Source of the DNA: Bispira polyomma
Taxonomy: Eukaryota
Length of the DNA stretch: 64,000 nt
Reading direction: 5' to 3'
Assembly: GCA_965649765.1 (NCBI GenBank)
Contig: OZ287756.1
Location: forward strand, 17,422,001-17,486,000
Made by a program: the position numbers and the translations under genes. Below are positions 23,890-60,170 of this stretch, piece after piece; position 1 is the stretch's first letter; every line of letters starts with the position of its first letter. Below the pieces are notes generated by a model, which was not told where the DNA came from, searched no databases, and worked only from the letters and a program-made list of their open reading frames with translations.

Positions 23890-26800
23890 TGTTACATAAA
23901 CACTCCTGAGGGGGTCAGTTAGTTAATGGGTAACTTAATTAAATATTTTTCTATTATTTTGTTATTTGTATATATTGATGAACTCTATTTACAAAGTATT
24001 GGATTTCCAAGAGCATTGATGGATATAAAATGCAAGAGTAGAAGTGATTCAGATCATTGTATTTTTGTGTATTTGCAAAGGTTAGTTGATGATTATAACT
24101 GTAGCATTTCCATCTTCTTTAGAAGCTATCATCCACCATGATAGATTCAGTTTACTACAGGGCAGCAAAAAGACACGATGCACTAAATTTTTGTTGCAAA
24201 TATTATTTAATATTGTCACATTTAAAAATTCATAGAAATGTCAATATTAAGTTTCTGTTATATACTATTGTTTATTTCATACTTAAGTGTGGTGATGTTC
24301 AACCAAATCCTGGTCCCTCATCAGGTATTGGCTCTACATTTTTCAAAATGTGTCATGTAAATGTCAGAAGTTTATGCTCTAATAATTTCAGTAAGGTTGA
24401 CATAATAAGAACAAAATTATCCATACAGGAAGGATATGATATCATATGTGTTGGGGAAACTTGGTTGGATTCTTCAATATTGGACAGTGATATTAGCTTG
24501 GAGGGATATTGTATATTTCGCAGGGACCGTAATAGGCATGCCGGAGGAGTAGCTATGTACATTTCAGATCACTTAGGTTTTCAATACGTAACCGACACTG
24601 ACACTTTTGATACTGAAACATTAATCATAGAATTAGTAATAAATGGTAAAAAAGTCTTTGTTTTGTGCTGTTATAGACCACCTGGCTTTTCTGCTGAGCA
24701 AGTTGACGAATATTTAGTAAAATTCCAATCAATCTTAGACTCACTTTACATTAAAAAATATGATGCCATCCTCATATTTGGAGATTTTAATGATTGTTGT
24801 ATTGACTGGAATGACGAACATCCAGCAAGTGAACTGAAATCTAAATTTAGAAATCTGATTTCACATAACAATTTGATTCAGATTATAAGTGAACCAACAC
24901 ATGTTACTCCCACATCAGCTTATCTGTTAGACCTAATAATTACTGATTCTCCAAGTTTGATAATGGACCAAGGTATTGACGAGCCAATTGGTGATCCTTA
25001 TCATAGTATGGTATATTGTAATGTAACTTGTACCAATACTAAAGATAGAGCCTACACTAGAAATGTATGGCATTATGACAAGGGGAATTATGAAAGTTTC
25101 AGGACTGAATTAGGATGTATGCCTTGGCATGTTATGGATAACTTCGAAATTAGTGAATGGGCTGAACTTTGGACTAATGAATTTTTAAGTATAGCAAAAA
25201 AAAATATTCCGTTTAGACAGGTAAAAATTAAACCAAATGACAAATACTACATAACATCTGAGATCAAAAGGATGTTACAAAAAAAAAAAATAGAATGTGG
25301 AAAATGTGGCATAGAACAAAAAACTACAATTATTATGAATGCTTTAGTGTGTTAAGGAAGGAAGTGAAATTTGCAATAAAAAATTCAAAACATTACTTTG
25401 ATAATAAAATCATAGAAAAATTGAATAGTCCCCAGTGTTCAACTAAAGATTACTGGCATCTATTAAAGACAATTTATGGCAATAAGCATAAACCTAGTAT
25501 ACCAAGTATCATAGATGGTGATAATATAATATCAGTGACAAAACAGAAAACGGACTTGTTTAATCAATATTTCTGTTTAAAAGCTCAACTTCCTGACAAC
25601 AGTAACCTACCACAGCTTCCCAAAATATTTGAAGTACCAAAGTACTGTTTATCTTCAATTAACACAAATGAAGAAGAGATAGAAAAGATTATTAGTTCTT
25701 TGAATGTAAAAAAAGCTAATGGTCCAGATAATATCAGTAATAAACTCTTAAAAGAAGCCTCCTCAAGTATATCCAGTTCCCTATGTTGTTTATTCAATTC
25801 TTCTCTGTCAAAGGGGACAGTACCTCAATGTTGGAAAATGGCTAATGTCACACCTGTATTCAAAGGAAAGGGTAGTAAGCAGGAAACAAAAAATTATCGC
25901 CCTATCTCATTGCTATCAAATGTAGGAAAATTAATGGAACGTATTGTGTTTAAACATGTGTATAAATACTGTTTTGAAAACAAAATTTTAACATGGAGAA
26001 ATTCGGGTTATAAACCGAATGACTCCACAGTTAATCAACTATTAGCTATTACCCATAAAATCTATCAGGCCTTAGAAAAGGGTGAAGATTATTGCTTTAT
26101 ATCATTAGATGCAACCGCTGCATTTGACCGAGTATGGCATGCAGGGATGATTTATAAACTGCAAAAAATTGGTATTACTGGGCCCCTTTTAGAATGGTTT
26201 ATTGATTATTTAAAGGATAGAAAACAGAGAGTGGTCATTGGAGGACAAAATTCTGAATATGTCAGTATAACAAGTGGAGTTCCACAAGGCTCTATACTGG
26301 GTCCATTGCTATTTCTAATCTACTTTAATGATATGGTAGATGACACAAAAACTGAGAGCTTTCTTTATGCAGATGACACCTCCCTGTGTGAAGCTATATC
26401 AGACAGTCAGAGTTGTTTTGAAAAGTTAAATCAGGATTTAAAAATAATAGAAAATTGGGGTAAGCATTGGCTTGTAAAGTTTAATCCCACTAAAACAAAA
26501 TATATTATTTTTTCAAAAAGATTAAATCAGCCTCATTATCCAAATTTATATTTTGGAGATGAAACAATTCAGTGCGTAAATACCCTAACACATTTAGGGA
26601 TAACATTTAATTCAAAACTGACATGGAATAATCAAATAGAAAAGATCCTAGACCGAGCATACAAATCACTATCACAACTAAAAAGGGTTTCATTCCAGTT
26701 ACCACATTTAGCAAAAAGGCAAATTTATATAAGTTTTGTGCGTCCGATCCTAGAATATGGTGCAGAACTGTTTGACAACTGTACCGAAGAACAAAGTAAA

Positions 26801-27741
26801 TTGTTGGAAAAGATTCAGCGTGATTTTTGCTTAACAATAACTGGTGCATATAAAAAAACAAGTCATAATTCTCTGTTGTCTGAGTGTGGCTTTCAACCAC
26901 TAAAACAAAGACGTAAATTAAAAAAGCTTCACCTTATGTATAAGCTACAAAATGGCCTTGTGCCGGAATATCTCAGACAAATATGTCCCCCTGTTGTGTC
27001 TGTTACATCAAATTATAAATTAAGATATGGTAAGAAAATAAAGTCAATAAAAACTAAAAAAAATTACTTTCATACATCATTTCTTCCGTCCACTATAAGA
27101 GAATGGAACCTCCTTAATCCAAGTGTACAAGCTGCATTGTCAATAGAAACATTCAAATCAAAATTGAAAGCAAAACATAAATTTTTCAAAGTGTATCTAT
27201 GGCACTACAGTAAAGCCGCTGTCCATCATAGTAGGATTAGAATGGGTTTGAGTGCTTTATATCAACACAGAAAATTGTATAATTTCATTGATTCGGGGGT
27301 ATGCTCTTATTGTGGCGCAATTAAGGAGGATGCCAAACATTTCTTTTTGACATGTCCGTCCTTTGCTGCTCTGAGGTTGGAAATGCTACAGAAAGTAAAC
27401 ATAGAAATACCTGAAATGAAAATTAACTTTAATGCAAATAAACTACTTCAAATAATTATAAATGGCACCGGTAGTTTTGATGTAGATAAAAAATTATTTG
27501 AATGTGTGCACTCATATATAGGAAATTCCAAAAGGTTCAGTTAATTGTAAATTGTATATCTGTATCATTGATAAATGTACGATGTATTGTAATAACGATG
27601 TTATGTGTAGCCTATATTTATTATTGTTACAATGCAGTTTGTAATTGATTTGTTAATTTTGGACAAGAGCCTCTAGTGGCCTCACGGCTGTGGGCAATTG
27701 TCATAAAATAAATAATGTTTAAATAAAAAAAAACAAAAAAA
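23890..27741 (+). mobile_element. CR1-group non-LTR retrotransposon (APE-RT-CCHC), no ORF1 seen
   Basis: APE and RT ORFs, a 3' UTR with conserved terminal motif, and an A-rich tail at 27721-27741. Possible TSD CAATGT (23884 / 27742); the 5' boundary is uncertain. Confidence 0.9.
24138..27544 (+). CDS. LINE ORF2: 2A-like peptide, APE endonuclease, reverse transcriptase, C-terminal CCHC; one frameshift in an A12 run (25279-25290)
   Basis: HVNVRSL, GETWL, GDFND and LLDLI (APE). NYRPISLL, GVPQGSILGPLLF and YADD (RT). CSYCG...HFFLTC. The two ORFs overlap at the homopolymer. Confidence 0.92.
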
Positions 27742-28860: not shown

Positions 28861-29222
28861 TATTGTAAAGTTAAATGTAATTCTATATATACAACTGACA
28901 AAGTTGCAAATAGTTTCATCCTTTCATGGTGGATGTAATTGTAAATGTTTTCTTTTTCTAACCCTAAAATCTCGGATCTTGTTTTTGTTGTTGTATGCCA
29001 TTAGTTTAATTCTTTGCAACTGTTGTATGCGACAAAATCTCATAAAATACTCACAATAAGAATAATTGCACACAATTAGCTTAGTTGTGTAAACCAAGCT
29101 TTAATGAAACGCTTGATGTTATTGTGATGTGCACAGCTATCCACCTAAGACCTCGTCAATAAAAAGGACACAACTAGGACCTTATGCAAGGCTAAGAGCT
29201 GTACAGTACAATGAAATAGTTT

Positions 29223-29414
29223 CAAAATAGAACAGGTTTGTACACATATTCTTTCTCCCTTTAAAGTTAACAGAGTTGACAGTGCACAGTGGGATCAGGA
29301 TTTGCTCAAATATAGTTACAAAATAGAACAGGTTTGTACACATTTTCTTTCTCCCTTTAAAGTTAACAGAGTTGACAGTGCACAGTGGGATCAGGATTTG
29401 CCCAAATATAGTTA
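29223..29414. repeat. 96-bp tandem duplication
   Basis: CAAAATAGAACAGG...AAATATAGTTA occurs twice with few mismatches. Confidence 0.9.
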
Positions 29415-31760: not shown

Positions 31761-32708
31761 AATGAAAATCCTACTGGCTTGGATCATATAGATTAGTATT
31801 CTCTCATGATTTGAAAGTATGGGTCACTCAGGTAATTTTGTTATTGTATATATATAAGGTACAATTTAAATCAGGTTAGAATCTGATACAGTTTTTGTCT
31901 TGTTTGAATAAAGGCTTCTTTCTGTTACTGATAAAACTCTGACCTTCCATTAATTGTTTAAAAGTCTGTTAAAATTTTGATTCAGAGTTGGCGGATGTGT
32001 GAGTTTCTGATGGAGATAGTTTGAGTACTGTAGAACTATGACATATGTGTTGATCAATCATATTTTTACACAAACTGATTGATTGAACCTAGTGTAACTC
32101 ATTTTGCATACATTACACAATAGGCCATTTCCCCTAATTTTTTTATTATTTAGGAATTTCCTCTTCTTGTCATCTCCATGATTTAAATTAGATCTTTGCA
32201 TGTCTTACTCTCGCTTATATTATAGTGTACCAAAGGTGAAATTGACAAAATTTAGAAGTAGGCTAAAATCAAGAAATGTAATTAAAATGTAATACAGTAA
32301 TATCAACAAAATCATTTAGTAGTTAAGTTTTCTCTTAAACATAGATATCCCACAGTGAAAATGACCTAGCATACTCTCCAATCATATCATTGCTATAATA
32401 AGTAGCTCCAGACATAATTATTGCTCCAATGACTAGTGACGTCTTAAGTGGAAATCTCCTTCTTCATATCATTATCAAGGAATTGGCATAACTTACTACA
32501 GTGTTGAGTATTCCCTAAATGTATATAAACATAGGTTCTGACCATAATATATGTCTGTTCACAGTATGAAGCACTCCTTACTTAAGTTATGAAAAGACAC
32601 TAATTATATGCTTCTTGCTCTTAATATTATGGACTGCTATATAAATTATCTCTTTTTCACATAATGTATACTTTTGGTCTTTCTGTATATAAAGTTTATC
32701 ATGTATTG

Positions 32709-33109
32709 TATTTAACATAAGAAATGAAGTTTTGCTGTTAATGCTATGAACTAATCATAAATTTAGAAAGTAGAGTATATAAGCACTAGATATTCTCTGA
32801 CAAAGAGGCAGAGGAAGGGAGAGTAGTTACCACCAGAGATAGTGATTAGAATAGGTCTAGCAACAGACTATGTGGTATAATACAGAGATAAGTTCTTAGA
32901 CAAAGAGGAAAACAGCTGCGGGACTCTGTGTAATTATGAAGCTCGGGAAAATAGTGCTGGTCAAGCTCTTTGTGTACAAAGTTAGATGTGTGTGTGTGTT
33001 TGCTGAAATAAAATATAGTTTGGTTTAAATTTGGATTATTATTATTTAGTGCCACCCCCGGTACCTGCTACATCCTATACATCATAGGGGTCAACCCTTT
33101 TACGGCACA
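32709..33109 (+). repeat. 5' LTR (portion shared with the 3' LTR)
   Basis: 401 bp with about 3 substitutions versus 44129-44529. TATATAA at ~32786, AATAAA at ~33007, ends GGCACA. Confidence 0.92.
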
Positions 33110-33125
33110 TGGTGGAGATGCCGGG
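33110..33125 (+). promoter_or_regulatory. Primer binding site complementary to tRNA-Ala 3' end
   Basis: TGGTGGAGATGCCGGG directly after the LTR is the complement of CCCGGCATCTCCACCA. Confidence 0.85.
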
Positions 33126-33211
33126 TAATTAATCAATATTTATAAAGAAACAAACAGTTATAACTTTCACATAGTATCAGGATATTTCACTCAGGATCAA
33201 TAATAATCAGC

Positions 33212-33220
33212 ATGGTGAGT
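33212..33220 (+). promoter_or_regulatory. Leader start codon plus splice donor (ATG|GTGAGT)
   Basis: Consensus 5' splice site about 100 nt after the PBS, directly following AGCATG. Confidence 0.75.
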
Positions 33221-33607
33221 ACCTCCATTACACTATTAAAATGGAAAGAAGTTATAAACTCTATTCTGGTGAACACTGTGTAACTGTTACATATAGCTAT
33301 CTGATGAAACATGTAAATAAACCAATGATGCAAATTATTGAAGACATTTCCTGGGTAGCTTCACATTTAAATGGTACAGTTGTGAATCAACAATGGAAAC
33401 AACTTTTAATTATAAAAGCACCAAGTGACTATTCTGCCTTAGAAGTTTTGCTAGTATACTTAGAGATGCAACTATTACTGTAACTTTGTGAATTTTATGA
33501 AACATAAATAACCTAATGTGACTAAAAAGTTACAGTTGTTAACACTTACTGTTGAATATGCAAATACTATATGTACTAGAGTGTAGCTCCCAACATCTGA
33601 TACTCAC

Positions 33608-34806
33608 ATGTCAAACAGATATAACCTTAGACTTTTGCCTGGTAGAAAACAAATATTAGTAGTTAGAAATGCAATGGAAAATGTACAACCACAGCCGGCA
33701 CTACCAGAACAACCAGTGGAACACAACAACCATCCTCCGCAACCAGTACAAAATCAACCAGCTCAACCTGATCAACCAGCACCGCCTCAACAACAGCCTG
33801 CTGACCTAATAATGGATCCAGAAATTCACCAGCCAGCACTTCATAATCCATTGGCAGTGTCCTTTAAACCAACTACATTCAATGGACTACACCCGGAAAC
33901 TGCAGGACGATGGTGGAGAACATACGAGAGGTACAGTACACTCAGTGGGATAAATGGGAATGACCGATGTCACCTATTTGGACTATTGCTCTCGGGAAGT
34001 TCAGAAATTTGGTTTAATACACTTCCACCACAGATCCGAAATGCACACACCCAGCTACAGTGACAAATGGCCGTATTGAGTCGATCACAAAGGGCAGGCG
34101 AAACAGTTGATGAGTACATCACAGATGCAAGGTCAAAGATGACAGATTATAACTATGAAGCAAATTTGCAGATGACTCTGCTCATAAATGGATTACGCCC
34201 AGAAATTAAGACCCTAGTACTGCAACACTTACCCTTCCAGGACGTCGATGCTTTAGTAAACAAGGCTAGACATGTTGAATCAGCCCTCCAGACACAGTCT
34301 GCGCTATCACTACCTGCATATCCCATGAACATGATGAAAGTAGGTGTAGCTGAAGAAAATGGTGACAAAGATATACCAGGAACACTATTCGGTGGAATAG
34401 AAAAGAATCTTGAAGCCCTGACCAAGAAGTTTGATGGGCTACTTAAGGACCTCACCCACCTCACGCAGAGTAAAAGGAGCAGTCCACCAGCTGCCAGGTG
34501 GAATGACAGGCCATCTCCTTGGAAACCAAGTTCAAATAATCAACCAGGCTACAGGGAGAAAGTATTTACCAAACCCCCAAACTATTCTGGTGGGTATAGG
34601 CCAAGTGACACATACCAGCAGAAGCGGCAACGTAACTACCAATGCTACAATTGTGGGAGAAGTGGCCATTTCAAAGCTCAGTGCCGTTACAATAACACTA
34701 ATAGAGATGTAAATAGACAGTACAACCCAGAGAGACGCACAAGGTCACCCAATGGAAGGTTCCGGAGCCTTCACCAGCTCCAAGACATCAGAATATGGGA
34801 AACTAG
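33608..34806 (+). pseudogene. gag (capsid plus CCHC nucleocapsid); in-frame TGA at 34061 and a 1-nt deletion near 34768
   Basis: PTTFNG...W, Q.AGETVDEY, LINGLRPEIK, CYNCGRSGHFKAQC. Restoring one base gives ...SPSPAPRHQNMGN-stop at the slippery site. Confidence 0.88.
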
Positions 34807-34839
34807 AAAACCCTGTTCCAAACTGGGGATGGGACAGGG
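34797..34839 (+). promoter_or_regulatory. -1 programmed ribosomal frameshift signal (gag-pol)
   Basis: G GGA AAC heptamer, 7-nt spacer, 10-bp stem CCCTGTTCCA / TGGGACAGGG. The -1 frame is the pol frame. Confidence 0.8.
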
Positions 34840-37800
34840 ATATTAGTTGTAAAAACAAAGTTGATGATGACAAAAACTGTGTTATGAACACCTGTGAATT
34901 AAATAAATCTGCAGGAATCATAGAAGAATGCATGATCCATGTGAATATTTGTACTAAGGCTATTCCAGCCTTAATAGACTCAGGTGCTACTCATTCGATT
35001 ATAGGACCTTCTCTGTTAACCAAACTTTCACAGCTTAGACAGAACCTTACTGCTGTAAAGCCTGAGGTTTTTGCCAAAGCTGTCAATGGAAGTATGCTGA
35101 CTTACACCAAGGAGATTTGCTTTGTTGTAGCCATCGATGGACAGGAATATGAAGTAAATGCATATTATTCACATTCCTTAGAATATGACCTCATACTGGG
35201 ATATGATTTTATGAAAAAGGCTAAATTGACTATTAAGTTTGGCAAAATTCCTGTTATTTCCCCTAGGAAATTTGTGCTGAAATGCCCAAGAAACTTGATA
35301 GTGCAGCCTGGCGAAGAACTACTTGTTTGGTCTCAAATAATAGGGGCAGTGCAACAGAGTGAAGGAATAGTGACCATCCATTCAACACTACAGGGTATGG
35401 GACTTGTAGTAGCACGTGAATTAGTTAGTATAGACCCAGAAAAGAAATGGATACCTGTGCGAATTTTGAACCCTTACCTAGGCCCTAAAACTATTAACCA
35501 GGGAACCAGACTTGCAGATATTGAAAGACTAGGAGTAGGTGACAAAGTGATAGAAATTTCTGAGTCTAACCACAAAATCAATGCTACAAACAATAAGAAA
35601 GTTCGAATTAAACCACCAGAGGACTTTATTTCATTATTCGACCTGTCAGAGTCTACTTTCTCTGATCCACAAAAAGAGGAACTTCTGTGCCTACTGTGGG
35701 AATTCTCAGACACATTTCTAACTAAAGGAGATAAGTTAAAGTGTACTGATGTCCTGGAATTCCAAATTAAACTACAAAATGATGCTGAGACTTTCAAATC
35801 CCGTCCCTACAGAAGTAATCCAAAACTTCGAAAATAAATCAGTCAGCAAGTCAACCAATTGCTGGAAGATGGAATTATCAGGCCAAGTGTTAGTCCATAT
35901 GGCAGTCCTGTTCTACTGGTGTCAAAACCTGATGGAACTTATCGCATGGTGATTGATTACAGGCGTTTAAATTCCCAATGTATCAAAGATAATTTTCCTT
36001 TAGTGCGAATCCAGCATTCATTGGAAAGTATTGGTTCAGCAAATGCAAAGTACTTTTCTACTCTTGATTTACAATCAGGTTATCACCAAGTACCAATTGA
36101 AGAAACCTCAAAACCCTACACAGCATTTGTCACACATGATGGACTATTTGAGTTTAATCGGCTAAGTTTTGGCCTGGCAAATGCACCAACATGTTTTTCA
36201 CGTCTTATGACTAGAGTACTACAAGGACTCAACTGGGACATTGCACTACTTTATTTGGATGATATCATTTGTTTTAGCAGTGATTTTAATGGACACCTGT
36301 CAAACCTAAGAAAGATATTCTCTAGACTTAGAGAAGCACATCTCACTCTAAAGCCATCCAAGTGTATGTTTGGAAAGGAGAGGATAAAGTTCTTAGGGCA
36401 TATTGTTAGTGCCAAGGGCATTGAGCCAATCGAAGACAAATGTCAAGCTGTGAGAGACTTTCCACAACCTCGCAAGGTCAAGGATGTTCGTGCTTTCCTC
36501 GGATTGACCGGGTACTACCGCAGGTTCTTGAAAGACTACGCTAAGATAGCTGCCCCTTTAACCAACTTGACTAAAAAGGAGAAAACTTTTATCTGGAGTG
36601 ATGCTTGTGAAGAAGCATTTCAAAATCTCAAGCAAAAATTAACTGAAGCGCCTATTCTAGCTTACCCAGATTACCAAAACGATTACCTTCTATATACAGA
36701 TACAAGTTCGACAGCCATAGGGATGGTTCTATCACAAGAACAGACACGAATTGAAAGAGTGATTTCTTATGGAGGGAAAAAGCTCAGCACTGCAGAACAA
36801 AAATATAGTACCACAGAAAGAGAGTGTCTTGGGGTACTTGTTGCACTAAAACATTTCGAACATTATTTAAGAGGTGTTCATGTTACCATCATAACCGATC
36901 ATGCAGCTTTAAAATGGATGCTCACCCAGAATGAACCCAGAGGACGCATAGCAAGATGGGTTGCCTATATGCAACAATTTAATTACACAATAAAACATCA
37001 ATCGGGAAAAAGCATTGGAAATGCTGATGGGTTGAGTAGAAGACATTACCAGCACGATACGGAAGAAACAACTAAGCCACTAGATGAACAACTTGATGAA
37101 GTGATTCTTCCAGCAAATAGTAACCTAAAGATAAATGTTGCACCACTCACCTTCAGGGGAAGACGAACCAAGCTCAAGGGAAAGAAAAGTAAAGTTGAAA
37201 TAAGACCAGTCATTAAACTACCTGATGTTAAGTGGGACAAACTGAAAATTAGGCAATGTCAACTTAAAGATGATCAAATAGGCCCCATGGTTAAGTATCT
37301 GGAAGATGAAATTCTACCCACTGTTGACAAGAAGGCCAGAGAAGTTTTACTAAGTAGTGAATCATATGTATTGCACGACAGTATTCTGTATCACTTGCTG
37401 GATGTCAAGAGTTTACAAACTAAGAGGCAAACTGATGAACTTAGAATCTGTTTGGTTGTTCCTGAAGAGCTCAAATATGATGTATTAACATCTGTGCATG
37501 GTGATCTGCACTCAGGACATTATGGCACCCACAGGACTTATACAACCCTACGGTTAAAATATTTCTGGAAAGGCATGTACAGCGATTGTAAAAACTTTGT
37601 GGTTTCTTGTGAAAAATGTAACACTAGAAAGAACCCAGTTTCACCTGTAAGAGCTCCACTGCAGCCTCTAGAAGTGGCCAGAATAAATGAAAGATGGGCA
37701 ATGGACATAGTACACATGTCTATGACCTCCTGAGGCAACAAATACATTTTAACTTTTACTGAGTATTGTACCAGATATGTAGAAGCATTTCCTCTGCAGA

Positions 37801-38996
37801 ATACTCAGGCTGTCACGATTGCCAGGATTTTAGTGAATGAGATATGTTTTCGTTTTAGTACTCCACAAGAACTTTTAAGTGATCTTGGAAGCAATTTTAT
37901 CTCTGAGCTTGTAAGTGAGACCTGTAAACTGCTGGGAATAGAAAAAATTTACACCACACCATACCATCCACAGACTAATGGCTTAATTGAAAAATTCCAT
38001 TCAACTTTAGCCAAAAATCTGTCTATGTATGTGACAGCTGACCACAAGGATTGGGACCTGTTTGTTCGAGCTATTTGTTATGGCTATAACACTTCAGTCT
38101 GTGTGGACTCGACCCAGTACACTCCTTTCTTCCTCATGTTCGGGAGAGAACCCAACTATCCCTTGGATACTGTTCTGCCAAGCATTCAGGAAGTACCTTG
38201 CAGTGTACAGGAATATTTAGTCAAATTAGCCCATGCCAGAGAGACTGCTATGACCAACATCAGGGAACGTCAAGACGCTATCAAGAAAAGATACGATAGA
38301 TATGTAGCGCCAGACCCATTCCAACCAGGTGAACTGGTATGGATTTTCTTCCCAGAAATAAATGTTGGAGGAAGCCATAAATTCTTTCACAACTGGTCTG
38401 GTCCATATTTATTGATGGAGAAAATCAGTCCAACAAATTTTAAAGTAGTCCAGGCTCATGATCTCAAGCCACTTAAAAACCCAATACATGTAAACAGAAT
38501 GAAGAGGTTTCACCACAGAGCAGTGGTTCCACCAACACCTGAAAATCTACAAGATATAATTGACACAGCACAGGTGCATACACTAAATGATTTACATAGA
38601 AACGAACAAGCAAGGTTTCAACATGACAACCAGTTGACAACAAACCAAGTACCGCCAACTAGAAACACAGGGTTACAGCCAGTGCAAAATCTTGCTGATG
38701 GCATACACCAAGCTGATGTAGAATTACCAGACCCACCGGTACTAAGAACCGAAGTTAAGACTAAATCAGACAATATTAATGAGCAATCAAGTGAGCCAAA
38801 AGACAATGAGTATGAGATCAATAGAATCCTTAAAGCAAGATACAACAGACAAGGCAACATGGAGTATTTGATTGACTGGAAAGGATATCCCCCATCTGCA
38901 AGAACATATGAACCGTTAGAGAATTTGAACCCAATGGCACAGGAATATGTTAAAACGCAAAATGTACCTGTGGTTGGTAGAAACCCAAAGAATTAA
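34797..38996 (+). pseudogene. pol: protease, dUTPase-like spacer, RT, RNase H, integrase with GPY/F and chromodomain; in-frame stops at ~35835 and ~37731
   Basis: LIDSGA, LDLQSGYHQ, YLDD, DTS/ERE/TDH, HHCC, D-D-E, WSGPY, YEINRIL...YLIDWKGYP...TYEPLENL. The three track ORFs share one frame. Confidence 0.93.
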
Positions 38997-39129
38997 CATA
39001 TGATGCTTATGATTATACAGCCTCTTCAATGACTATAGGGCCCATGGTCTGAAGAAATAAGTCTGTAACATACATACTTTGTTTTTCTAAAGGGTTATGT
39101 AATAATTGAGACTGTTTCCTGTGTTTTAG

Positions 39130-41531
39130 ATGAACATCCATGCAAGTGTGGTACTTGTCCTCACGGTAATTGTCATTTCACCTATTGATGGCAAGCAGGA
39201 AAGTGTTGATGGGGTCACAATTGTAAGAGAGAATTACGGTGTAACATTTCATGAACAAGGCGTATTGGATAATGCCCATAGTGTGTGGCACCAAACGTTT
39301 GTTGTTCAGCTGATACATGATAACATACAGATGCCAGCTTCTTACTGCTCAGACCAGTACAGAAACAGAACTACATCTTCTGATGAATTATTATGCCCAG
39401 TTTTAATGGCTTACAACAAAAGACATTTGAGACTGACAAAGGAAATACAAGCCTCACAAGAAAATATAAAAATAATGCTAAGCAATTTCCAGAGTAGAAT
39501 AAAAGGGCTGTATTCGGTTTTATTGGACGCTTTGCTAAGTCACTGTTTGGTGTATCCACTGAAGAAGACACAAACATACTGCTAAATCAAATTAAAATTG
39601 TCCAGCAGCATAATGAGGCCAATACAGACCAGCTCAACATAATTACTGAAAATTTACAGTCTTACATCGTAAAGTCTGACATGAGAGCAGGACTTTTACA
39701 AAAAGCAATTCAACTAAACTACAAAGCTCTGGATGCAACAAGGGAACTTTTTAATGAAGTAATAGGCCGGACATTTAACAGATTTGCCCATTGGAGAAAT
39801 ATGCTTCCCACATATGGAGTACAATATGCTGACACTTTAAGTGACATACAATCTCACCTAGTCCACGAAGAAAATGCTGTACAAACCTTACTACAGGGAT
39901 ATATACCCTACTATTTTGTGCCTCCAAAAGAACTCCAGACTACATTACAACAGATTTCTGATGCCCTCCTAAATATTGGATCCTTTAAACTAACTCACAC
40001 AAAAATTGGATACTACTACCACCTGAATGACATTGCTTATCAGCGTGTGGATGACAAACTTTACATCAAATTGAGAATCCCTTTGACAGCCACAACTACC
40101 TTGTTCACTCTGTATAGGATACATGCTGTTCCTATTCCCCTTGCTGCAAACAGACAGGAAAGATCTATGGTTGAAATTTCAAAACCATATTTGGCAATAA
40201 GTAGTGATAAAACTTTTTATCTGTCTCTCACAGAAAGTGAATATCAGTTTTGTACAGGTTTACAGTTGAAAAGATGCAATCAGGCTCTAACTATGCAAGA
40301 GATAGCCCAGCCAAACTGTGCTTTGGCTCTATTTAATGACAAACCCTCATTAATATCTGAATTATGTAACATTCTTCTTCTCCCATCAACCAACTACAGT
40401 GAGTCACACATTGTTACTGTATCGGAAAATTCTTATCTAATTTCAAGTAAAGATACACATTGGATGCAAATTTGCCCTCGTAGTACTCCAGTACAGATCC
40501 CACCTTGTACAATCTGTATTGTCAAACTACCTTGTGCTTGTGCATTAAAGGGCCAAACTTTCTTTATCCCACCAACACTGCACAGTTGCAACTATGAATC
40601 ACAACCGGTTATACGACATCTGGTTAATTTAGCTGTGCTGTTTCATTTTTATGACAACCATCACAAATTGTTGAATCTTACATCAAAATCTTCTTTTCAA
40701 GGTCCTATTATACCTAACATACCCAAAATTAATGCAATCTCACAGGAATATAAAGATGTTGCACAAAAAGTCGATAAGCAGCTCTCTCTTGCATACATTG
40801 CCCGAAATTTAAAACAAGAAAAGAAAGTGTATCTAGACAAAGTTTCTAAACTGTATAGTGATTTAGGACCATTAACTAAGCCTCAGATAAGTACAGGTAT
40901 TTCTGTTATGACATGCATAAATTGTCTTGTAGCAGTACTAGCACTGGTCTTATCAATTAATGTGTATTTTAAAGTTGTAATAATGGCAAGAGCAGTACAT
41001 GCTCAAGAATTTTTGAATAATGAATCAAGTGATGATAGTGAAAAAGCGTTAGTCTCAATGAATATTGATGTGAATACCTACTTGACATTTTTCATGATGG
41101 TGATTCTTCTTGTTTTTGCTATTGGGTCAGCAAGTATGCTATTAAAGATATCGATTCGAGTAGTCAGATTAATTACTCCAAAAGCTCCTTGCACAACTAT
41201 CTGTCTGACCATCTTTGGCAACTACGACACAGTTACATTGAAACTGACAAAAACAAGTGTCCCGGCTAAGAATTTAAAGCTAGAATGCTCTAATAATGTG
41301 CTCGTTCCAAGCCTCACCCCACACATGTTTTTGCCTCTTGTAACTGTTGGATGGCAAAATGTTGTCATAAAGTCTAATGACGAGGAAATTATCAGCTTGC
41401 CAAACGAAATAGTAACAGGCGTGCTTAAAATTCGTCAACTGAAGCAAATAGTCACAAATGTGACAGAAATTCAACTCTTTGCTTCTACACTCGATGAACT
41501 GCATGAACTTCATACTTGGAAAATGTGTTGA
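39130..41531 (+). pseudogene. env: class I fusion glycoprotein of baculovirus-F/errantivirus type; 1-nt deletion at ~39504
   Basis: Signal peptide MNIHASVVLVLTVIVISPIDG. Restoring one A gives furin site RIKR and fusion peptide AVFGFIGRFAKSLFGVSTEED, followed by a heptad region, Cys-rich region and two TM segments. Preceded by acceptor TTTTAG. Confidence 0.88.
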
Positions 41532-41710
41532 AGTAAGCTCTTCATCTTTAAGTACTGGTTTTGTAAATGCTTAAGCCCCAGAAGCTTGTAGGCAAGCCAG
41601 TTATGTTTGTGTATTCTTTGGATGTACTTTCTGCATGTTTTTGTTTAATCCTGCATGATTCTATACTTATTTGTGTATTATAACCTATTGTATTATATCC
41701 TTCTGTATTT

Positions 41711-41743
<33 letters not shown>

Positions 41744-41808
41744 ATATCCTTATATCGTAATGTATAAGCATGAACCATTACTTTAGGTTATGTTTATTCA
41801 CTTTCTAG

Positions 41809-42315
41809 ATGTCTAAATTAGCAACTCCAGAAGTTAATGATGCTTATGTCTCTCCTTTGACATGGGAAGTCAAGGTTAACCAATGGTTTGATCACCAAAT
41901 GGAGTCCCAGGACTCAAGTGACTCTGACTTAGTTCCATTTGATGTGGGAGATAACAACTTTTCTATTTTGTATGATGAAGAACACTTCACCATACAGCCT
42001 CGCATTCAATCACTGAAATTGGAACTTTCATCAGATTCAAGTAAGACTGACCTTTCAGTATCTGACTACTACCTGAATAATATGTTACTAGTTCCCGATA
42101 GTTCTCAGGATGAGATCTACAACTTCTCAGACGATGAAAACCACAACTTCTCAGACCATGAGACCTACAACTTATCAGACCAAGCATCTGACATTAGTGA
42201 TAGTCTTCCTGACCTACCTTGTGTTACGCATATGGATAGTTCCCCACCACTGTCTGAAACTCCAACTACTAATAATACTCCTTTCCTCGACCATGCACCC
42301 TATAACCCTTCCTAA
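41809..42315 (+). CDS. Retroelement accessory ORF-A (168 aa, acidic Ser/Asp-rich), unknown function
   Basis: ORF begins exactly at acceptor TTCACTTTCTAG|ATG and lies inside the LTRs. Confidence 0.65.
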   Translation: MSKLATPEVNDAYVSPLTWEVKVNQWFDHQMESQDSSDSDLVPFDVGDNNFSILYDEEHFTIQPRIQSLKLELSSDSSKTDLSVSDYYLNNMLLVPDSSQDEIYNFSDDENHNFSDHETYNLSDQASDISDSLPDLPCVTHMDSSPPLSETPTTNNTPFLDHAPYNPS

Positions 42316-42413
42316 ATTGGTTTGCATATGTAGATGTTTTGTAACACACCAAAACCAAATGGGCTAAAAAAAAACAAAAAAACTGATTTATATTACCATC
42401 ATATCTCTTCTAG

Positions 42414-43001
42414 GCTGGACGTGGACAACGACTCCGTCAGATACTGTACGAACAGCAACATCCCACACATATGCAGCTAGCTGATGACACTCAAGTTGGA
42501 CCATCTACATCCTTCGATGGCGCAGGGGCAATGCTAATGCCCCTACAGAATGTACAGGAGCCCCAACCAGGAACCTCTGGCCAGTATGTTCCTGGTGTTG
42601 GCAGAGGCCTTCTGCTTTTGCAAATGCTGCAATCTGGACAAAGTTCAGGGATTGGCACACCTTCTCCTGCCAGTGGAAATTTCAATGCTCAACAATTTGA
42701 TGATGACGAAGACATTGACCTTGATCAGGCAATGCATCAATATTTCCAAGTGCCAGTGGAATATTCCCCCATATCTTCCCCGTCTGTCACACCACCTCCA
42801 GATCGCGAAGTACACATGACAGCACCCACAATCCAGCTCCAGCATTCAACACCACCACGCCAGATTACTCTGAATAAGCCAGCCATACTGAACCTCCCAA
42901 TGTGGACATCAAAACGTGGCACTGTACAACGCTGTAAATCTGCTTGTGCCGTGCCACCTCGAGTAAAACAAAATGCAACCACAAATGTAATACAATTATG
43001 A
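42414..43001 (+). CDS. Retroelement accessory ORF-B (195 codons; needs the leader ATG), unknown function
   Basis: Acceptor ATCTCTTCTAG|GCT opens AGRGQRLRQILYEQQHPTH in frame with track ORF 42471-43001. Confidence 0.65.
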   Translation, partial: AGRGQRLRQILYEQQHPTHMQLADDTQVGPSTSFDGAGAMLMPLQNVQEPQPGTSGQYVPGVGRGLLLLQMLQSGQSSGIGTPSPASGNFNAQQFDDDEDIDLDQAMHQYFQVPVEYSPISSPSVTPPPDREVHMTAPTIQLQHSTPPRQITLNKPAILNLPMWTSKRGTVQRCKSACAVPPRVKQNATTNVIQL

Positions 43002-43134
43002 TTACCTCTTATTTGTATGCTCTACTGGATACCACCCTAGCATGTACCATCTTGTTACTGACACTAACTTTGTTTTCAAACTTCATTATCCTACTTTACT
43101 CAACCCCCCCCCCCCCCTCCCTATTCTGTTTTAG

Positions 43135-43605
43135 ATGGAGTCACCTTCAACAAATGATTTTCTCAATGATTTAACCCGCTCTGCAAAAATATCCCGAAAG
43201 AAGACTGTAAAACAATATTTTGATCCCAGCTATCCGACAGACCAATTTCAAAACAATACACCAACAGATGGTTTGGATACTACAACTACGGCACATTTCC
43301 TTGATGAAAATGGCCAACAAGTGGTGCTGGCCTCTGATCCCTTACGTGAACCTGCCTCACCATCTGCCTTCTTAACTGGCATTCCTACTCCACCACAGCC
43401 TTCCCAAACCCCTGCACGTAGCACAAAACTTCCTTTTGTACATGAGTCAGCTTCAGGTTTCAAATCTTTCAATGTGCCTGGTCTCTTTCAGACTAAGTAT
43501 GCTGCCCTGATTATGGATTTAGATGTGGCATCAAGCACCTTCCCAAGCTTTAATTTGTGGCATTTTATAGACTATCTCAATCCTCCATTTGCACAGCGAC
43601 TTTAA
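43135..43605 (+). CDS. Retroelement accessory ORF-C (156 aa), unknown function
   Basis: ORF begins exactly at CCCTATTCTGTTTTAG|ATG after a long pyrimidine tract. Confidence 0.65.
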   Translation: MESPSTNDFLNDLTRSAKISRKKTVKQYFDPSYPTDQFQNNTPTDGLDTTTTAHFLDENGQQVVLASDPLREPASPSAFLTGIPTPPQPSQTPARSTKLPFVHESASGFKSFNVPGLFQTKYAALIMDLDVASSTFPSFNLWHFIDYLNPPFAQRL

Positions 43606-44128
43606 AGTAAGTGCAACAGCCCAAGGCCGGGGCACCTTAGACATTGCCACTTGTCAACCTGAGCTACTACAACCTCTCCTACACCATTTCCTTCTTCTGC
43701 AGTCATTGTAAACCCTACCAAACCGACTACCTCAGTTGACTTTTGTCAAGCACCACTATTTCTGTTTTGATATTTTTTTTAAAAAGTATTCATTGTTTGA
43801 TTAATTTACTTGTGTTGCTTTAACACCATCTGGTAATCTTATATCAAAAAAAAAAGATTATGTTGTATGAGATGTTTTATAATTTTGTACTCTGCTGCTT
43901 TTAGCGCTAATATTTTCTGAATTTACATATGTATACATATTTAACTGTATTTTGTCTTAAATGTTTATTATTCTGTAAAAGTCTGAAATGTATTTCACTA
44001 GTAGATATGCTAATCAAGTTGCTAGTATTTATTTTACCTTTGCTTTGGTATGCCTTGAGTATCATATGTATATTACTTATTTTCATGTATTAACTTTGTG
44101 TGTGTCAACTTATAATGCTATACCTTTT

Positions 44129-44529
44129 TATTTAACATAAGAAATGAAGTTTTGCTGTTAATGTTATGAACTAATCATAAATTTAGAAAGTAGAGTATGT
44201 AAGCACCAGATATTCTCTGACAAAGAGGCAGAGGAAGGGAGAGTAGTTACCACCAGAGATAGTGATTAGAATAGGTCTAGCAACAGACTATGTGGTATAA
44301 TACAGAGATAAGTTCTTAGACAAAGAGGAAAACAGCTGCGGGACTCTGTGTAATTATGAAGCTCGGGAAAATAGTGCTGGTCAAGCTCTTTGTGTACAAA
44401 GTTAGATGTGTGTGTGTGTTTGCTGAAATAAAATATAGTTTGGTTTAAATTTGGATTATTATTATTTAGTGCCACCCCCGGTACCTGCTACATCCTATAC
44501 ATCATAGGGGTCAACCCTTTTACGGCACA
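44129..44529 (+). repeat. 3' LTR (possibly 5'-truncated)
   Basis: Direct repeat of 32709-33109. No polypurine tract is visible in front of it. Confidence 0.92.
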
Positions 44530-46844
44530 ACAGTAATGATGGAAGGGGCAGTTGTTTTAGTTATTGTAAGCAATTTAAAATAATTGACACAGTCTTAATA
44601 TTAAATAAAAATAAAAATCTATGTAGCCTGAGTAGGTAATTATATCAAATTAGACCAAATATAAAGCCATAGATGTTCTTTAATTATTAAAACCTCAAAC
44701 TGGGTCAGAATTTTAAGTTCATTAATTCAATACAGTAATTTGAATAATATGGCATCATCACCATGGTGTAACTTCACTTTGACGTTAGACTTATTATTTA
44801 GATTATAACTTGGAAACTATTTGGTACAGGCTTCATATTTGCAACAGCTATTACCTAATAATCAGTACGTTTAGACAGTTATGATTCGACCTTTGGCCCT
44901 GGAGTTCTGACATTGACCTCAAACTCTTGTGTGCACTATACCTCAGTAAATACTTTCTACTTGTAACAACAGGTTGATATTTGGTACAATGATTTATTAT
45001 GGAGCATAGTTATGCAATGTCATGGTAAGAACTCATTTGAATCTTAGAGTAGTGAGCTATTGTGTATATTTTTAGCATGTCTGAAAAGTCACCTAGGACT
45101 AGACAGGAACAGCGGGATGGTGTTCTCATCAAACCATCAGAAAAAGGGAATAGTAGCAGCGAAAGTCAGGACAGTAACATCGATGATCCTCTTGGAGATA
45201 ATGCCCAAACTGAGCAAGAAAGAATAGAAAGAAAAATTCAAAATAGGGAAACAAAGAAAACAGAAGAAAAAGAAAAACGTGTATGTTCTGCTGAGAAACA
45301 ACGAGGTGGTCAACACATGGAAAAGAAAGGGAAAAAGGACAATTGAACAAAAGGCATGAATCTTAATAACAACTGGAGCATTGTTTTGAGACATAATTAA
45401 ATGTCCATAAAAGTAAAATAAACATGTTCCAGTCAGAAGCTTATACATATCAGTAATATCATGAGATTATGTGTGTTATGTTTATGTATACTAAATTCGA
45501 AGCACAAAATCAACAGATAGAATGAGTAAATAATCAGTTCAACAATAAGCAAATTCATCAACTAAAACTGCTCTGTCAATAGTTTGTTATAGTAAAATTA
45601 TACATAAACAAATTTTGTGCTTTTGTTTCACTTACAGTGATATTTTTTTTTTTTTTTTCATTTGCACATAATCAGTACTTGGCAATAGTATCAGACACTC
45701 TTTCTAACTGATTATCTGAAATACAATAGATTATTTTCCGGAAGTAGAAGATGTGCAAGAAACCTCCTCCGAAAATAAAACGTTTGCAAAAAAATGAAAA
45801 GAACCAAAGAAAACAGGTTTTTAAAATGGCTTTTTTCGAAATGTATGTTTCAAAATACCTACTAAATAATAGTACTAAAATACTATGATTATACAAAAAC
45901 AAAAATACTTCTTCTAACAGAGATATAAAAACATATTCGAAGATGAGGCATATGTAATAGCACACTCAAACCAGTATGTAGGGAAAAACAAAACACATTT
46001 GGTCTAAAAACTTTTCTTAAGGTGACATAAAAAAGTGGGGTGACATTCAAACTAATTAAAATACACATGGTTGAATATCGGAAAGGTGACTTTCCGTGAG
46101 TCTTTCAGCCACACCACAAAAAGTCTGGCTTAGGGTTTCTCTGGGCTGTCAATAAAACATGCCACCCAGCATGGAAAAAGCTAGTTGCTATGTCTTGAAT
46201 CAGGGAGATATAGGGCGGGTACCCACAAAGTTAGATGTACGTTAGTCTATGTTAACCACGCAAGGCTTACGTCAATATTTGATGCAAAAGTCCACGCACA
46301 GTTGTAAAAGCCCATGCAGAAATACATTTATATATTTCCTTACGTCAAACACGTTGTATTACGTGGAGAACCACGTTTTCTTACGTTAATACATGTGAAG
46401 ACTTGCAAGTGATGGACTGTTACGTTAAAATGTTTATGCAAAGACACGCAAACATATGTAAGACTATGATTATGAATACGCCAAAGGACGTCATTTTACG
46501 TTTGAGCCCGTTAATTATTACGTTGTGTGTATGTTTTAGTACGTCAACTTATGTAATGTGACGTTTGCCACGTCAAAGTAGGTAAAGTTACGTTAATTAA
46601 TACTTCCATTGACGTCCCATCACGTATATTACGTCAACACTCGCTTGATCATGTCAGGCAACGTTTCTAAAGTACACGTACGTTTTCTATCACGTTGCTT
46701 CCCGCACCACAAAGTAGCTATATATTGAGTGATTTTTCACGAAGCATGTTCATTCACGTGTGAGTCTTCATATGATAAGGAGCTTACATTTTTCAACAAT
46801 AAAACAATTGTTTAACAATAGAATTATTTTATTGCAGTATAACA

Positions 46845-48147
46845 ATGGTTGGAGTAAATTTTCAACAACAACTTGCTTTAAATCAAGCTATGAATTTGCA
46901 AGTACAAGCTTTGAACAATGTTGTAGATCTTGCAACTTCATCAGAGGCGGAGAAGAAGGGCTCAAAGGAGGGACAGGACGGTGTGGGTTAGGCCATGGCT
47001 AGTTAGATGGAGACAATACGGTTACTATGAAAACCTAATGGCTGAACTAGAGGCAGAAGATCTAGCTAGTTACAGAAACTTTATCCGTTGTGACCCACAG
47101 TTCTTCAGGGAACTGATGAACAGACTAGACGGCAGACTGACCCATCAAATAAACAACTACAACACCCACAGACCAGCACTTGATGTTGGTTTAATGTTGA
47201 CCATTACTATGAGATATCTGGCCTCTGGATAAAGCTATCACAGTCTGATGTATGGTTTCAGGGTGGCACATAATACCATATCTAAGGTCATTAAAGAGGT
47301 GCGTCAGGCCATTCAAGAAGAGTACCTGGATGAAATTATCACCACCCCCGGTACAGAGGATGGTTGGCGTGATGTGGCTAGTGTTTTTGCCAACAGATGG
47401 AACTTTCACAACACCATTGGTGCTTTAGATGGGAAACACGTGGCCATTGTAAAACCAAAAGGTTCTGGATCTCTGTAGTTTAACTACAAAAAATTCACAT
47501 CTATCATACTCATGGCAGTAATAGATGCTGAATACAAGTTTATGTGGATCGATGTTGGTGCCAATGGTAGTTGCAGTGATGCACAGCTGTGGAACCATTC
47601 CCCCTTAAAACCTGCTTTAGAGAATTGGTGGCTCACTGTCCCTCCATCCACACCACTACCTGGGGATACTGAACCGGTGCCTTACTTTCTGTTGGCAGAT
47701 GATGCTTTTGCCCTTACTAAGACTCTGATGAAACCATTTGGGCACCGAAATCTCACCCGTCCTGAGAAAATCTACAATTACAGAGTGTCACGGGCCAGAC
47801 GAGTGGTTGAAAATGCCTTTGGCATATTGTGCAACAGATTTCGATGTCTCACCACCAAACTTCAACATGATGTGCCCAATACCATTCATATTACTAAGGT
47901 GTGTTGTATTTTGCACAATGTCTTTCGGTTAAGAGACCCTACCAATCATGTGGAGCTACTGGACAGAGAGGATGTTGACCATAACCTGATACGTGGTGCC
48001 TGGAGACAAGGATTGGACATGCATGACATGGACGATATTTTGACCGACAATACATCCAACAAGGAGGCCAAGGCTCAGAGACAATTACTGAAGATATACT
48101 ACAACAGCAGGGGTGCAGTTCCATGGCAGGATCGTATGATAACATAA
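46845..48147 (+). pseudogene. Harbinger (HARBI1-like) DDE transposase; N-terminal frameshift, stops at 47230 and 47476
   Basis: WVRPWL, RYLASG, GALDGKH, (F)NYKKF, ADDAF, YNYRVSRARRVVENAFGIL, CCILHN. Confidence 0.92.
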
Positions 48148-51016: not shown

Positions 51017-53048
51017 TACAAATCCAGAGTTATATATATATTTTAATATCAGAAAATGAATCCAGAAAAACCATCTACACTCATCAACTGCTAGATGTAC
51101 ACTACAATGCGTGACTTTGCATAGGCACACAATATATATGGAGAATCTTGCGTCAGCAGACGCGAGACATAATGTCGGCCAATGGGAGCTTGTGTCCAAT
51201 TAAGCACAATTTGCGAGAACTTGCATGTTCAAACGTAAGCTTGCGTGTCTTTGCGAGTCTGTATGTAAGAAACGTACAGCTGTGTGGGAGAACATAGACT
51301 GGCGAGTGTTAACGTGAGAAAATGCGACATGTAGCAACAGTTCGTGTCTTTCGGCGAGATCAAACGTACATCAAAGGCACGTCAATGTGGGAGTTACGCG
51401 TAGACCTTTTACATCAAAGAAACGACTTGCACGTGGCAATATAGTAACCGAATATTATATTTATAGTTTGACTAATAGACTCATCTAATGCCCCCGTCCC
51501 ACCGACTTACACGTAAGCAGTCGTTAGAAATTTGGTTCTACGTAAGGTTTGCGTGGTAGTTGCATGAACAAGCGTTACATACAGAGACATACATAAACTA
51601 GCGTGAGAGTTGACCCGCAAGAAATTTGTAATTTTAAACTGTTTGAAATTTGGACACGCACGAGCTGTAAAAACTGTGACATATTCAAACGTGAACTTTG
51701 ACGTAAGCATTACGTCTTTAAACGTCAAGAAACATCTGTATACGTCACAATGTATATATATACGTCATTGCTATGCAAGGCCACGGCCCCAATGCAAACA
51801 TACGCATTGCCACGTGCAAGTCGTTTCTTTGATGTAAAAGGTCTACGCGTAACTCCCACATTGACGTGCCTTTGATGTACGTTTGATCTCGCCGAAAGAC
51901 ACAAACTGTTGCTACATGTCGCATTTTCTCACGTTAACACTCGCCAGTCTATGTTCTCCCACACAGCTGTACGTTTCTTACATACAGACTCGCAAAGACA
52001 CGCAAGCTTACGTTTGAACATGCAAGTTCTCGCAAATTGTGCTTAATTGGACACAAGCTCCCATTGGCCCACATTATGTCTCGCGTCTGCTGACGCAAGA
52101 TTCTCCATATATATTGTGTGCCTATGCAAAGTCACGCATTGTAGTGTACATCTAGCAGTTGATGAGTGTAGATGGTTTTTCTGGATTCATTTTCTGATAT
52201 TAAAATATATATATAACTCTGGATTTGTAATGATGGTGAGAAGGAGGAATACTAAGAAAATTCAGGCCATTCAGGCCAGGGGCAGGGTACAGAAAGCCAA
52301 CCAAAAGGGTAGAGTGGATCTTACAACGCTGTACTCTCCTCTCTGGACAGATTTCCAGATTGGAAAAGAGGAAGAACACGACAGTAAGTTTGATTTATAT
52401 TTACAATAATTATGTAAACTGAAGATAATATATGACAAAGAGGACATGCAATAATGTATTGCTGTTGAACAATGTCTGTCATAATTAATTAGTCACAGTA
52501 ACCTGTTTTGCTAATGTCAATAGCATGCATACAGTGTAATTTCTATTATCCGACCACATTGGGAGAGTGAGAATTGGTTTGGATAAAAGGTCTGTAAAAT
52601 AGAAGGGACATTTTAGTATTGAACAATAGCAAGAAATAAGTTTTTGAAAATGAATTTGAGTTCGTGAAATGGAATAGTCGGATAATAGAACTTTTGCTGC
52701 ATTTAAGATAAGGTTGTGAAATATATTTTTGAAATACCAAAAGGGATAGTTCTCTTGTTGGGACATTTTCAGTGCATGTGCAGCAGGACTTTGGTTATCC
52801 GACCATGGTGGGGGAGATATTGTTTGTTTACATTACAGAAATATTACTCCATTTACATTGATAATGTTGAAGGTAAACATAATTGATTTGAAAAGGTTCC
52901 CATTTGGATGCAACCCCAGGATGAAATGCAGGAGAAATATGCTCATTAAATATTTCAGATTTTAAAGGCCAGGCTGAAATGCTGCAAAAATGTCTTCATG
53001 AATTTTAGTTTCCTTCTTTTAAATGTCTCTGCATTTGTCTTTTGAATT

Positions 53049-53257
53049 TGGTAAGCAGGACACCTTTAGGGGACTGCTACGTCAGTCCACACACTTTTAC
53101 TCTGCTACCTTAAATTCCATTAAGTTAGAACGACTTTTATTAAGCCATCTGTCCATCCCTACACTAGCCAATGAGAGGGCTCGAATGCTACCTTCTTCCC
53201 GCAAAAACATAAGCCACCATATTAAATTCCGAATTTGAAGGAACAACAAGTTCATTT
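53049..53257 (+). repeat. Ngaro repeat A1 (209 bp)
   Basis: Identical by inspection to 59035-59243. Confidence 0.92.
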
Positions 53258-53362
53258 AAAAAAAAAAAAAAAAAAAACTTTTATTTTACTTATTTACATC
53301 GAATTATATTTTATTTTTACATATTGTGTCGCACAGTTGGTGCTAAAGTGATATAGTGAATC

Positions 53363-54970: not shown

Positions 54971-55015
54971 GTAAATTTTCAACTAGCAGAGTCACATGCC
55001 ATAAGTACTGAGTGT

Positions 55016-57814: not shown

Positions 57815-57846
57815 TTTCAGGTTCTACACCAATTACACAGCAGCTT

Positions 57847-58797: not shown

Positions 58798-58804
58798 TTT
58801 GGCT

Positions 58805-59940: not shown

Positions 59941-60170
59941 TGGGGCTAAAAATTTTACTTTTATTTTAAACATTTTTAAGCTTTTCTTATACTATGTTAA
60001 GGTCATATGTAAATATATATATACTAACATGTAAAAAATAAATACTCAAACTGAATCTGTTACTACCTTCTTCTCATATTTACAACATATTATGACCTTA
60101 TAGATCGCAACTTGACCTTCAACAATCTTGACCTTTAATTTCAATTATATCCCTCCAATGATGGGGACTG
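59941..60170 (+). repeat. Ngaro repeat B2 (230 bp)
   Basis: Identical by inspection to 58805-59034. Confidence 0.92.

Follow-up and report, generated by a model that had tools for sequence, protein, structure and literature searches.

A Ty3/gypsy provirus of Bispira polyomma with a candidate array of spliced accessory genes downstream of env

Can an invertebrate retroelement carry a set of accessory genes that are expressed by alternative splicing from one short leader exon? Alternatively spliced accessory genes are regarded as a hallmark of the complex vertebrate retroviruses, and the question is raised by a long terminal repeat (LTR) retroelement in the genome of Bispira polyomma. The element lies in a 64,000-nucleotide (nt) stretch of contig OZ287756.1 (assembly GCA_965649765.1, positions 17,422,001 to 17,486,000 of the forward strand), which we call the window and within which all coordinates are given. 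An initial annotation of this stretch had read positions 33212-43605 as a Gypsy element with one leader ATG exon and four splice acceptors, one at the start of env and three at the starts of orphan genes, and had recognised no described equivalent. We refer to the three open reading frames (ORFs) that follow env as A, B and C. Our analysis leads us to propose, at a probability of roughly 0.55, that subgenomic spliced mRNAs would be made from the leader donor to all four acceptors, as in a complex retrovirus.

Acceptor-like sites at the starts of env and ORFs A, B and C

The four pyrimidine-rich acceptors, ending at 39129, 41808, 42413 and 43134, were all present at the ORF starts as the initial annotation had claimed. 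Each consists of a tract with 12-13 pyrimidines (Y) in 15 positions, followed by TAG. At all four sites this TAG doubles as the in-frame stop codon that marks the upstream limit of the frame, a detail that had not been described before, and it is for this reason that the frames of env, A, B and C open exactly at the AG. The claim that all four exons are in phase 0 to the leader ATG also holds, but it is automatic, because the AG is part of an in-frame TAG.

An ATG directly follows the AG in env, A and C. Sites with at least 12 Y in 15 positions, followed by YAG and ATG, occur only five times on both strands of the 64-kb window, and three of the five start env, A and C. The frame behind these three sites stays open for 151 codons in env, 168 in A and 156 in C; behind the 12 weaker sites (at least 10 Y in 15) it stays open for 4-85 codons. 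A similar picture emerged from the TAG triplets. A pyrimidine tract precedes 39 of the 1,784 TAGs in the window (2.2%) and 5 of the 154 on the sense strand of the element, and four of these five are the TAGs that open env, A, B and C. By arithmetic from these counts, four randomly picked TAGs would match this about 2 times in 10 million. Furthermore, three open frames of at least 150 codons arose in none of 2,000 dinucleotide shuffles of the region downstream of env, and there were none on the opposite strand. The pattern of acceptors at ORF starts is non-random. The combination of a pyrimidine tract, an in-frame TAG and an open frame also offers a simple signature with which such cassettes could be searched for in other elements.

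It is hardly credible that ordinary ORFs and motif matches without biological meaning came together here by chance. Taken singly, several components of the pattern are indeed unremarkable, among them the hexamer GTRAGT, the 19 codons without an ATG at the start of B and the phase 0 relation. Jointly, however, the four of five tract-bearing TAGs at ORF starts, the three adjacent ATGs, the shuffling result and the conservation of B (see below) argue against such an explanation. The spacers upstream of A and B are AT/T-rich, with a GC content of 0.27 between env and A and of 0.29 between A and B, and to this extent they agree with the AT-rich spacers that had been reported; that between B and C, in contrast, is C/T-rich (GC 0.42). 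The ORFs have a higher GC content.

The proposed common donor, an ATG followed by the consensus 5' splice site GTGAGT, was also present behind the primer-binding site (PBS), as had been claimed. It lies about 100 nt past the PBS-like stretch, between the PBS and gag, where the major donors of retroviruses lie. The 9-mer ATGGTRAGT was found twice in 128 kb, and one of the two is the leader site at 33212-33220.

If this donor is used, expression of the element would proceed as follows. Transcription would start in the 5' LTR and end in the 3' LTR at its single poly(A) signal, and the unspliced RNA would serve both as the genome and as the mRNA for gag-pol. The leader 5' splice site (33214|33215) would be joined alternatively to 39129, 41808, 42413 or 43134, which would give nested subgenomic mRNAs with env, A, B or C as the first long frame. 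When the element was scanned, no AATAAA was found between env and the signal in the 3' LTR, so that these mRNAs would be 3'-coterminal. The leader AUG would read straight into each exon, which is open from its first base and in frame with the one-codon leader exon. In addition, env, A and C would have an AUG of their own at the junction, whereas B would rely on the leader AUG or on an internal one.

The spacers might be removable as introns as well, as is suggested by donor-like sites one base past the stop codons of env and C. Two of the four stop codons are followed, one base later, by GTAAG (at 41533 for env and 43607 for C), and only 12 such 5-mers occur in 11.8 kb. Genomic RNA with many unused splice sites would need help in its export. 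A role like that of the retroviral Rev, or of CERV from the nematode element Cer1 (see below), is for this reason plausible for one of the three, although the assignment of export of intron-containing genomic RNA to A, B or C is speculation.

ORFs A, B and C

A full HMMER scan of 1.84 billion representatives gave homologues of B (P0015-P0017) of 141-145 amino acids, with an E value of 7e-10 and 41-43% identity. They form one cluster, and conserved blocks run along most of the length. The contig of P0016 and that of P0002, a relative of env with 52% identity to the env studied here, have the identical length of 95,267 nt; they are probably one contig, and both proteins very probably belong to one related element. 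B is a conserved gene of related elements, and because its similarity is kept at a divergence where unconstrained sequence would retain none, we infer purifying selection on B and its linkage to this lineage. Of the three genes described as orphans, A and C have no detectable relatives, and B has homologues.

No homologues of A or C were found in a word-indexed search restricted to 0.55-1.75 times the query length, which is insensitive to short, disordered proteins of about 40% identity, and this failure is not evidence of absence. The homologues of B itself were found by the full HMMER scan only. At E values up to 1, Pfam gave no match for A, B, C and two overlapping small ORFs, retroviral accessory families included, and none of the three ORFs had a match among PDB sequences at the same threshold. 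These Pfam and PDB searches thus did not bring up Rev, Rex, Tat, Tax, Tas or Bet. Neither A, B nor C has a membrane segment. AlphaFold2 gave a mean pLDDT (predicted local distance difference test score) of 41 for B, from a 4-row alignment, and of 52 for C, from the single sequence, and the models were too poor for fold comparison. A short acidic motif is reiterated in A by three tandem 24-nt (8-codon) repeats at 42110-42180 on the plus strand. All three ORFs are predicted to encode soluble, largely disordered proteins built of short motifs, and these would most likely be regulatory or adaptor factors. A, B and C are not paralogues of one another, of env, of the leader ORF or of gag, and second copies were not found in the window.

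These features bear on a second explanation, namely that functional spliced genes are limited to env and perhaps B. In that case A and C would be lineage-specific and either fast-decaying or recently acquired, without maintained proteins, and their acceptor-like starts would be by-products of T-rich spacers. The lack of homologues and families, the low-complexity composition of A and C and the low-confidence model of C agree with it. T/C-rich spacers do raise the local chance of pyrimidine tracts; yet both A and C are preceded by a tract with an in-frame TAG and open with an immediate ATG, a combination of which the window has very few examples. At an LTR identity of 99.2%, 1.5 kb would stay open by chance since insertion. 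On the other hand, no shuffle gave three long frames. G is enriched at codon position 1 in A, B and C, as it is in gag, pol and env, so that their codon-position composition is like that of the known genes of the element. A codon-usage frame test also favours the annotated frames of A, B and C; this test is biased, since the other frames contain stops, and is given little weight. The GTAAGT one base past the stop codon of C and the insensitivity of the word-indexed search are further points for A and C as real genes, and we consider it rather unlikely that they are not maintained.

The region downstream of env could also have been captured once from the host, or be foreign sequence nested within the element and no part of its own genome. 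Its composition does shift (it is C-rich, with a GC skew of -0.26 at 42-44 kb), and A and C are orphans. However, in another genome the homologues of B apparently share a contig with an env relative, the region is flanked by neither terminal repeats nor duplications, and every ORF is on the sense strand and has the acceptor design seen at env. A host gene captured through RNA would lose its introns, and A, B and C each have their own start and stop and are not exons of one frame. We regard such a capture as very unlikely. A 36-nt inverted match, 72% complementary (41407-41442/43732-43767), brackets the A-B-C cassette and is at chance level for a 9-mer seed.

Points against the proposal and other 5' partners

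Several observations weigh against the proposed splicing from the leader donor, in addition to the failure to find relatives of A and C and the lack of family matches described above. As to the donor, GTRAGT by itself shows no enrichment in the element (4 sites, with about 5 expected from the density in the window), and in a transcript that begins behind the TATA-like box, five ATGs of short upstream ORFs would come before the leader ATG. As to the acceptors, the C/T-rich coding sequence of B and C yields further acceptor-like sites, and the ATG found at three of the junctions is unnecessary if the leader ATG is used and fits other 5' partners equally well. The B exon is open without an ATG for 19 codons, as had been reported, with the first ATG at codon 20; taken alone, this is unremarkable, since other frames in the window have 5-97 such codons. 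The homologues of B start, as called, at a Met aligned to residue 40 of B, downstream of its ATG-free N-terminus.

As to the element, the copy is broken, so that its own expression would say little. We recognised no polypurine tract, there being no purine run that abuts 44131, and no target-site duplication, as the flanks inspected (32700-32715, 44120-44135 and 44530-44540) do not repeat. Decay, recombination or slightly misplaced LTR ends may account for both.

Some of these points would be expected if the acceptors were real and had another 5' partner. Spliced-leader trans-splicing of a long transcript, another donor or short first exons from internal promoters would then provide the 5' ends, the ORFs would start at their own ATGs (codon 20 or 40 in B), and the leader ATG|GT would be coincidental. 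An ATG directly at the acceptor is typical of trans-spliced genes in nematodes and tunicates, and the ATGs at three of the four sites, the start of the B homologues, the unenriched GTRAGT and the upstream ATGs agree with this explanation. As for internal promoters, ORF A is preceded, 60-100 nt upstream, by a (TA)n/TATA-rich stretch, and internal env promoters have been documented in the Tor elements of Oikopleura (PMC4402516). Nevertheless, ATGGTRAGT is rare and is positioned here as is the env donor of the relatives in Drosophila, and from the leader ATG the frame would continue open into each of the four exons. Spliced-leader trans-splicing in particular is not known in molluscs or annelids, which make up two of the three phyla from which this lineage has been reported, and no spliced-leader RNA family was found in the window. 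We consider a different 5' partner unlikely and prefer splicing from the leader donor.

The provirus, known systems and surrounding DNA

The provirus at 32711-44529 on the plus strand is a Ty3/gypsy LTR retroelement, and the ORFs discussed lie inside its LTRs, in agreement with the initial annotation. Its two LTRs differ by 3 mismatches (99.2% identity), and the LTR pair with the adjacent PBS-like site is the structure of a Ty3/gypsy element. Pfam matches along the gag and pol pieces begin with a zinc knuckle and continue in the order protease, reverse transcriptase, then RNase H, then integrase, which is that of Ty3/gypsy elements (Metaviridae). A chromodomain (Chromo, PF00385; E value 1.7e-11) lies C-terminal to the integrase at the end of pol. 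The provirus is recently integrated yet defective, with a total of three in-frame stops and one frameshift in gag, pol and env. For the PBS-like stretch no tRNA partner was found: ARAGORN gave no tRNA, and the single tRNA that Rfam detected in the window (2099-2188) is no match for it. The TATA-like box is lost from the 3' LTR copy (44196, corresponding to 32776) through one of the three mismatches. In the leader, an 80-codon ORF without a family match in Pfam is found at 33241-33483 on the plus strand, upstream of gag and within the proposed first intron; 18 ATGs lie between the TATA-like box and the ATG of gag.

Pfam gave no match for the two env pieces themselves. The larger piece has 13 relatives (P0001-P0013) with 34-57% identity, the closest having 57%, and four of them (P0004, P0005, P0012 and P0013) match Baculo_F (PF12259) above the cut-off. 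Alignment with the relatives revealed a common signal peptide, an ectodomain, two hydrophobic segments and a long conserved tail. One distant named match is from the oyster Crassostrea gigas. Judged by these relatives, the large ORF at 39130-41531 is a real env, as the initial annotation had supposed, and it is of the F type. The chromodomain and the F-type env downstream of pol assign the element to the "ancient errantiviruses" of Cnidaria, Mollusca and Annelida, which bear a chromodomain and an F-type env (Chary & Hayashi, eLife 2026, PMC13524379); an errantivirus of the insect type was ruled out. Like them, it has the order LTR-gag-pol-env, a Ty3/gypsy pol, a chromodomain after the integrase and an env resembling baculovirus F and paramyxovirus F downstream of pol. 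The gag-pol-env backbone is a member of an already known kind. That survey searched for gag, pol and env only, did not mention splicing and referred to ORFs beyond env only in a generic remark. The three extra ORFs and the acceptors found here are additional to its description.

Splicing of env from a leader exon has been described in the endogenous retroviruses of Drosophila. In the ZAM, Beagle, springer and idefix subclades, env is made from a spliced subgenomic mRNA: its donor stands upstream of gag and follows a short peptide exon, or no more than the start codon's AU, and its acceptor is where the main F-type env exon begins (Senti et al., EMBO J 2025, PMC12992720). The ATG|GT leader exon of our element is of the same design, as far as the motifs at 33212-33220 and 39112-39129 go. 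The Drosophila elements, however, have one acceptor and one spliced gene, whereas here four acceptor-like sites stand before env and three ORFs, the integrase carries a chromodomain and the splicing is proposed from motifs.

A spliced accessory gene of a Ty3/gypsy element is also known from Cer1 of C. elegans, in which the CERV product is needed for export of the unspliced genomic RNA, a task similar to that of Rev (Sun et al., PLoS Genet 2023, PMC10309623). Compared by description, CERV is one gene of five exons that shares peptides with gag, in contrast to the three single-exon ORFs found here, which are unlike gag, env and each other; CERV did not come up in any of the searches. Additional lineage-specific sense ORFs occur in other elements of the Metaviridae type. 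In the MDG1 group, sORF1 and sORF2 precede gag and are carried by unspliced transcripts, sORF2 encoding a membrane protein (PMC11952523); the ORF3s of bdelloid rotifers are single genes that are often enzymes or env-like (PMC5408684). Neither forms an array of three ORFs behind env with individual acceptors. The earlier statement that no equivalent has been described was therefore too broad, as the leader-exon env splice, the spliced CERV and the sORFs are known, but it stands for the array itself: our literature search gave no description of three ORFs that follow env and have an acceptor apiece.

The likeness to the complex retroviruses (lenti-, delta- and spumaretroviruses) is, on paper, one of organisation: one candidate leader donor, several putative alternative acceptors within the 3' third, small ORFs of the non-structural kind that follow or surround env, and a predicted shared 3' end. 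The element is not a member of that group, since its pol and env are of the Ty3/gypsy and Baculo_F types and it shows no sign of overlapping or two-exon coding genes. We hold only tentatively, at somewhat less than even odds, that an invertebrate Metaviridae lineage independently evolved the logic of complex retroviruses, with a donor at a one-codon ATG exon, four acceptors, env and three accessory proteins, at least one of which is conserved across host genomes and may manage the fate of an intron-rich genomic RNA. If this is true, such an organisation evolved at least twice among the reverse-transcribing viruses, and in a widespread group some gene content has probably been missed by surveys restricted to gag, pol and env. 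It would also provide new small disordered viral proteins, one of them present in more than one genome, with which to study the balance of spliced and unspliced RNA and host defences. The coordinates of the features of the element are collected in Table 1.

Table 1. Features of the provirus, in order along the plus strand of the window
Feature	Coordinates	Strand	Remarks
5' LTR	32711-33109	+	399 nt; TATA-like box at 32776, AATAAA at 33007, CA end; direct repeat with 44131-44529
PBS-like stretch	33110-33127	+	TGG start; adjoins the end of the 5' LTR; read from the sequence
Leader ATG with consensus 5' splice site	33212-33220	+	GTGAGT at 33215; proposed common donor, putative use
gag	33608-34846	+	Pfam zf-CCHC (zinc knuckle); broken by 1 in-frame stop
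pol	34752-38996	+	Pfam RVP_2, RVT_1, RT_RNaseH_2, Integrase_H2C2, rve, Chromo; broken by 2 in-frame stops
Acceptor-like site 1	39112-39129	+	pyrimidine tract and TAG, the in-frame stop opening env; ATG next
env	39130-41531	+	baculovirus-F/errantivirus type; signal peptide, two hydrophobic segments, conserved long tail; broken by 1 frameshift
Donor-like GTAAGC	41533-41538	+	one base past the env stop codon
Acceptor-like site 2	41791-41808	+	pyrimidine tract and in-frame TAG; ATG next (ORF A)
ORF A	41809-42315	+	168 codons; acidic (isoelectric point about 4), Ser/Asp-rich; no relatives found
Acceptor-like site 3	42396-42413	+	pyrimidine tract and in-frame TAG; CTGAT branch-point-like motif about 30 nt upstream (ORF B)
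ORF B	42414-43001	+	195 open codons, first ATG at codon 20; Gln/Pro-rich; kept in related elements
Acceptor-like site 4	43117-43134	+	pyrimidine tract and in-frame TAG; strongest tract in the element; ATG next (ORF C)
ORF C	43135-43605	+	156 codons; Pro/Ser/Thr-rich, predicted terminal helices; no relatives found
Donor-like GTAAGT	43607-43612	+	one base past the ORF C stop codon; acceptor-like sites downstream at 43702 and 43904
3' LTR	44131-44529	+	AATAAA at 44427, the only one downstream of env

The surroundings of the provirus are ordinary animal repeat-rich DNA. Two pairs of inverted repeats with 100% identity, 46368-50202/60166-64000 (3,835 nt, running to the end of the window) and 50198-51440/51806-53048 (1,243 nt), represent either a real large palindrome or an assembly artefact. 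The arms of the 3,835-nt outer pair contain identical PIF/Harbinger ORFs of the DDE_Tnp_4 family at 47512-48147 (+) and 62221-62856 (-). A DIRS-like element at 53044-60170 has ORFs at 53363-58797 with an RNase H-like domain and the N-terminal SAM-like domain of a tyrosine recombinase, and carries direct repeats at 53044-53263/59030-59249 and 58805-59034/59941-60170. On the other side of the provirus, two intronless genes of the Major Facilitator Superfamily, at 15227-16729 (-) and 18187-19674 (+), form an inverted duplicate of 95% identity that includes their upstream regions. The tRNA gene at 2099-2188 (-), which contains an intron, scored 58 bits with Rfam and was missed by ARAGORN. A long interspersed nuclear element with endonuclease and reverse-transcriptase ORFs is located at 24138-27544 (+), and a 96-nt tandem pair at 29216-29407.

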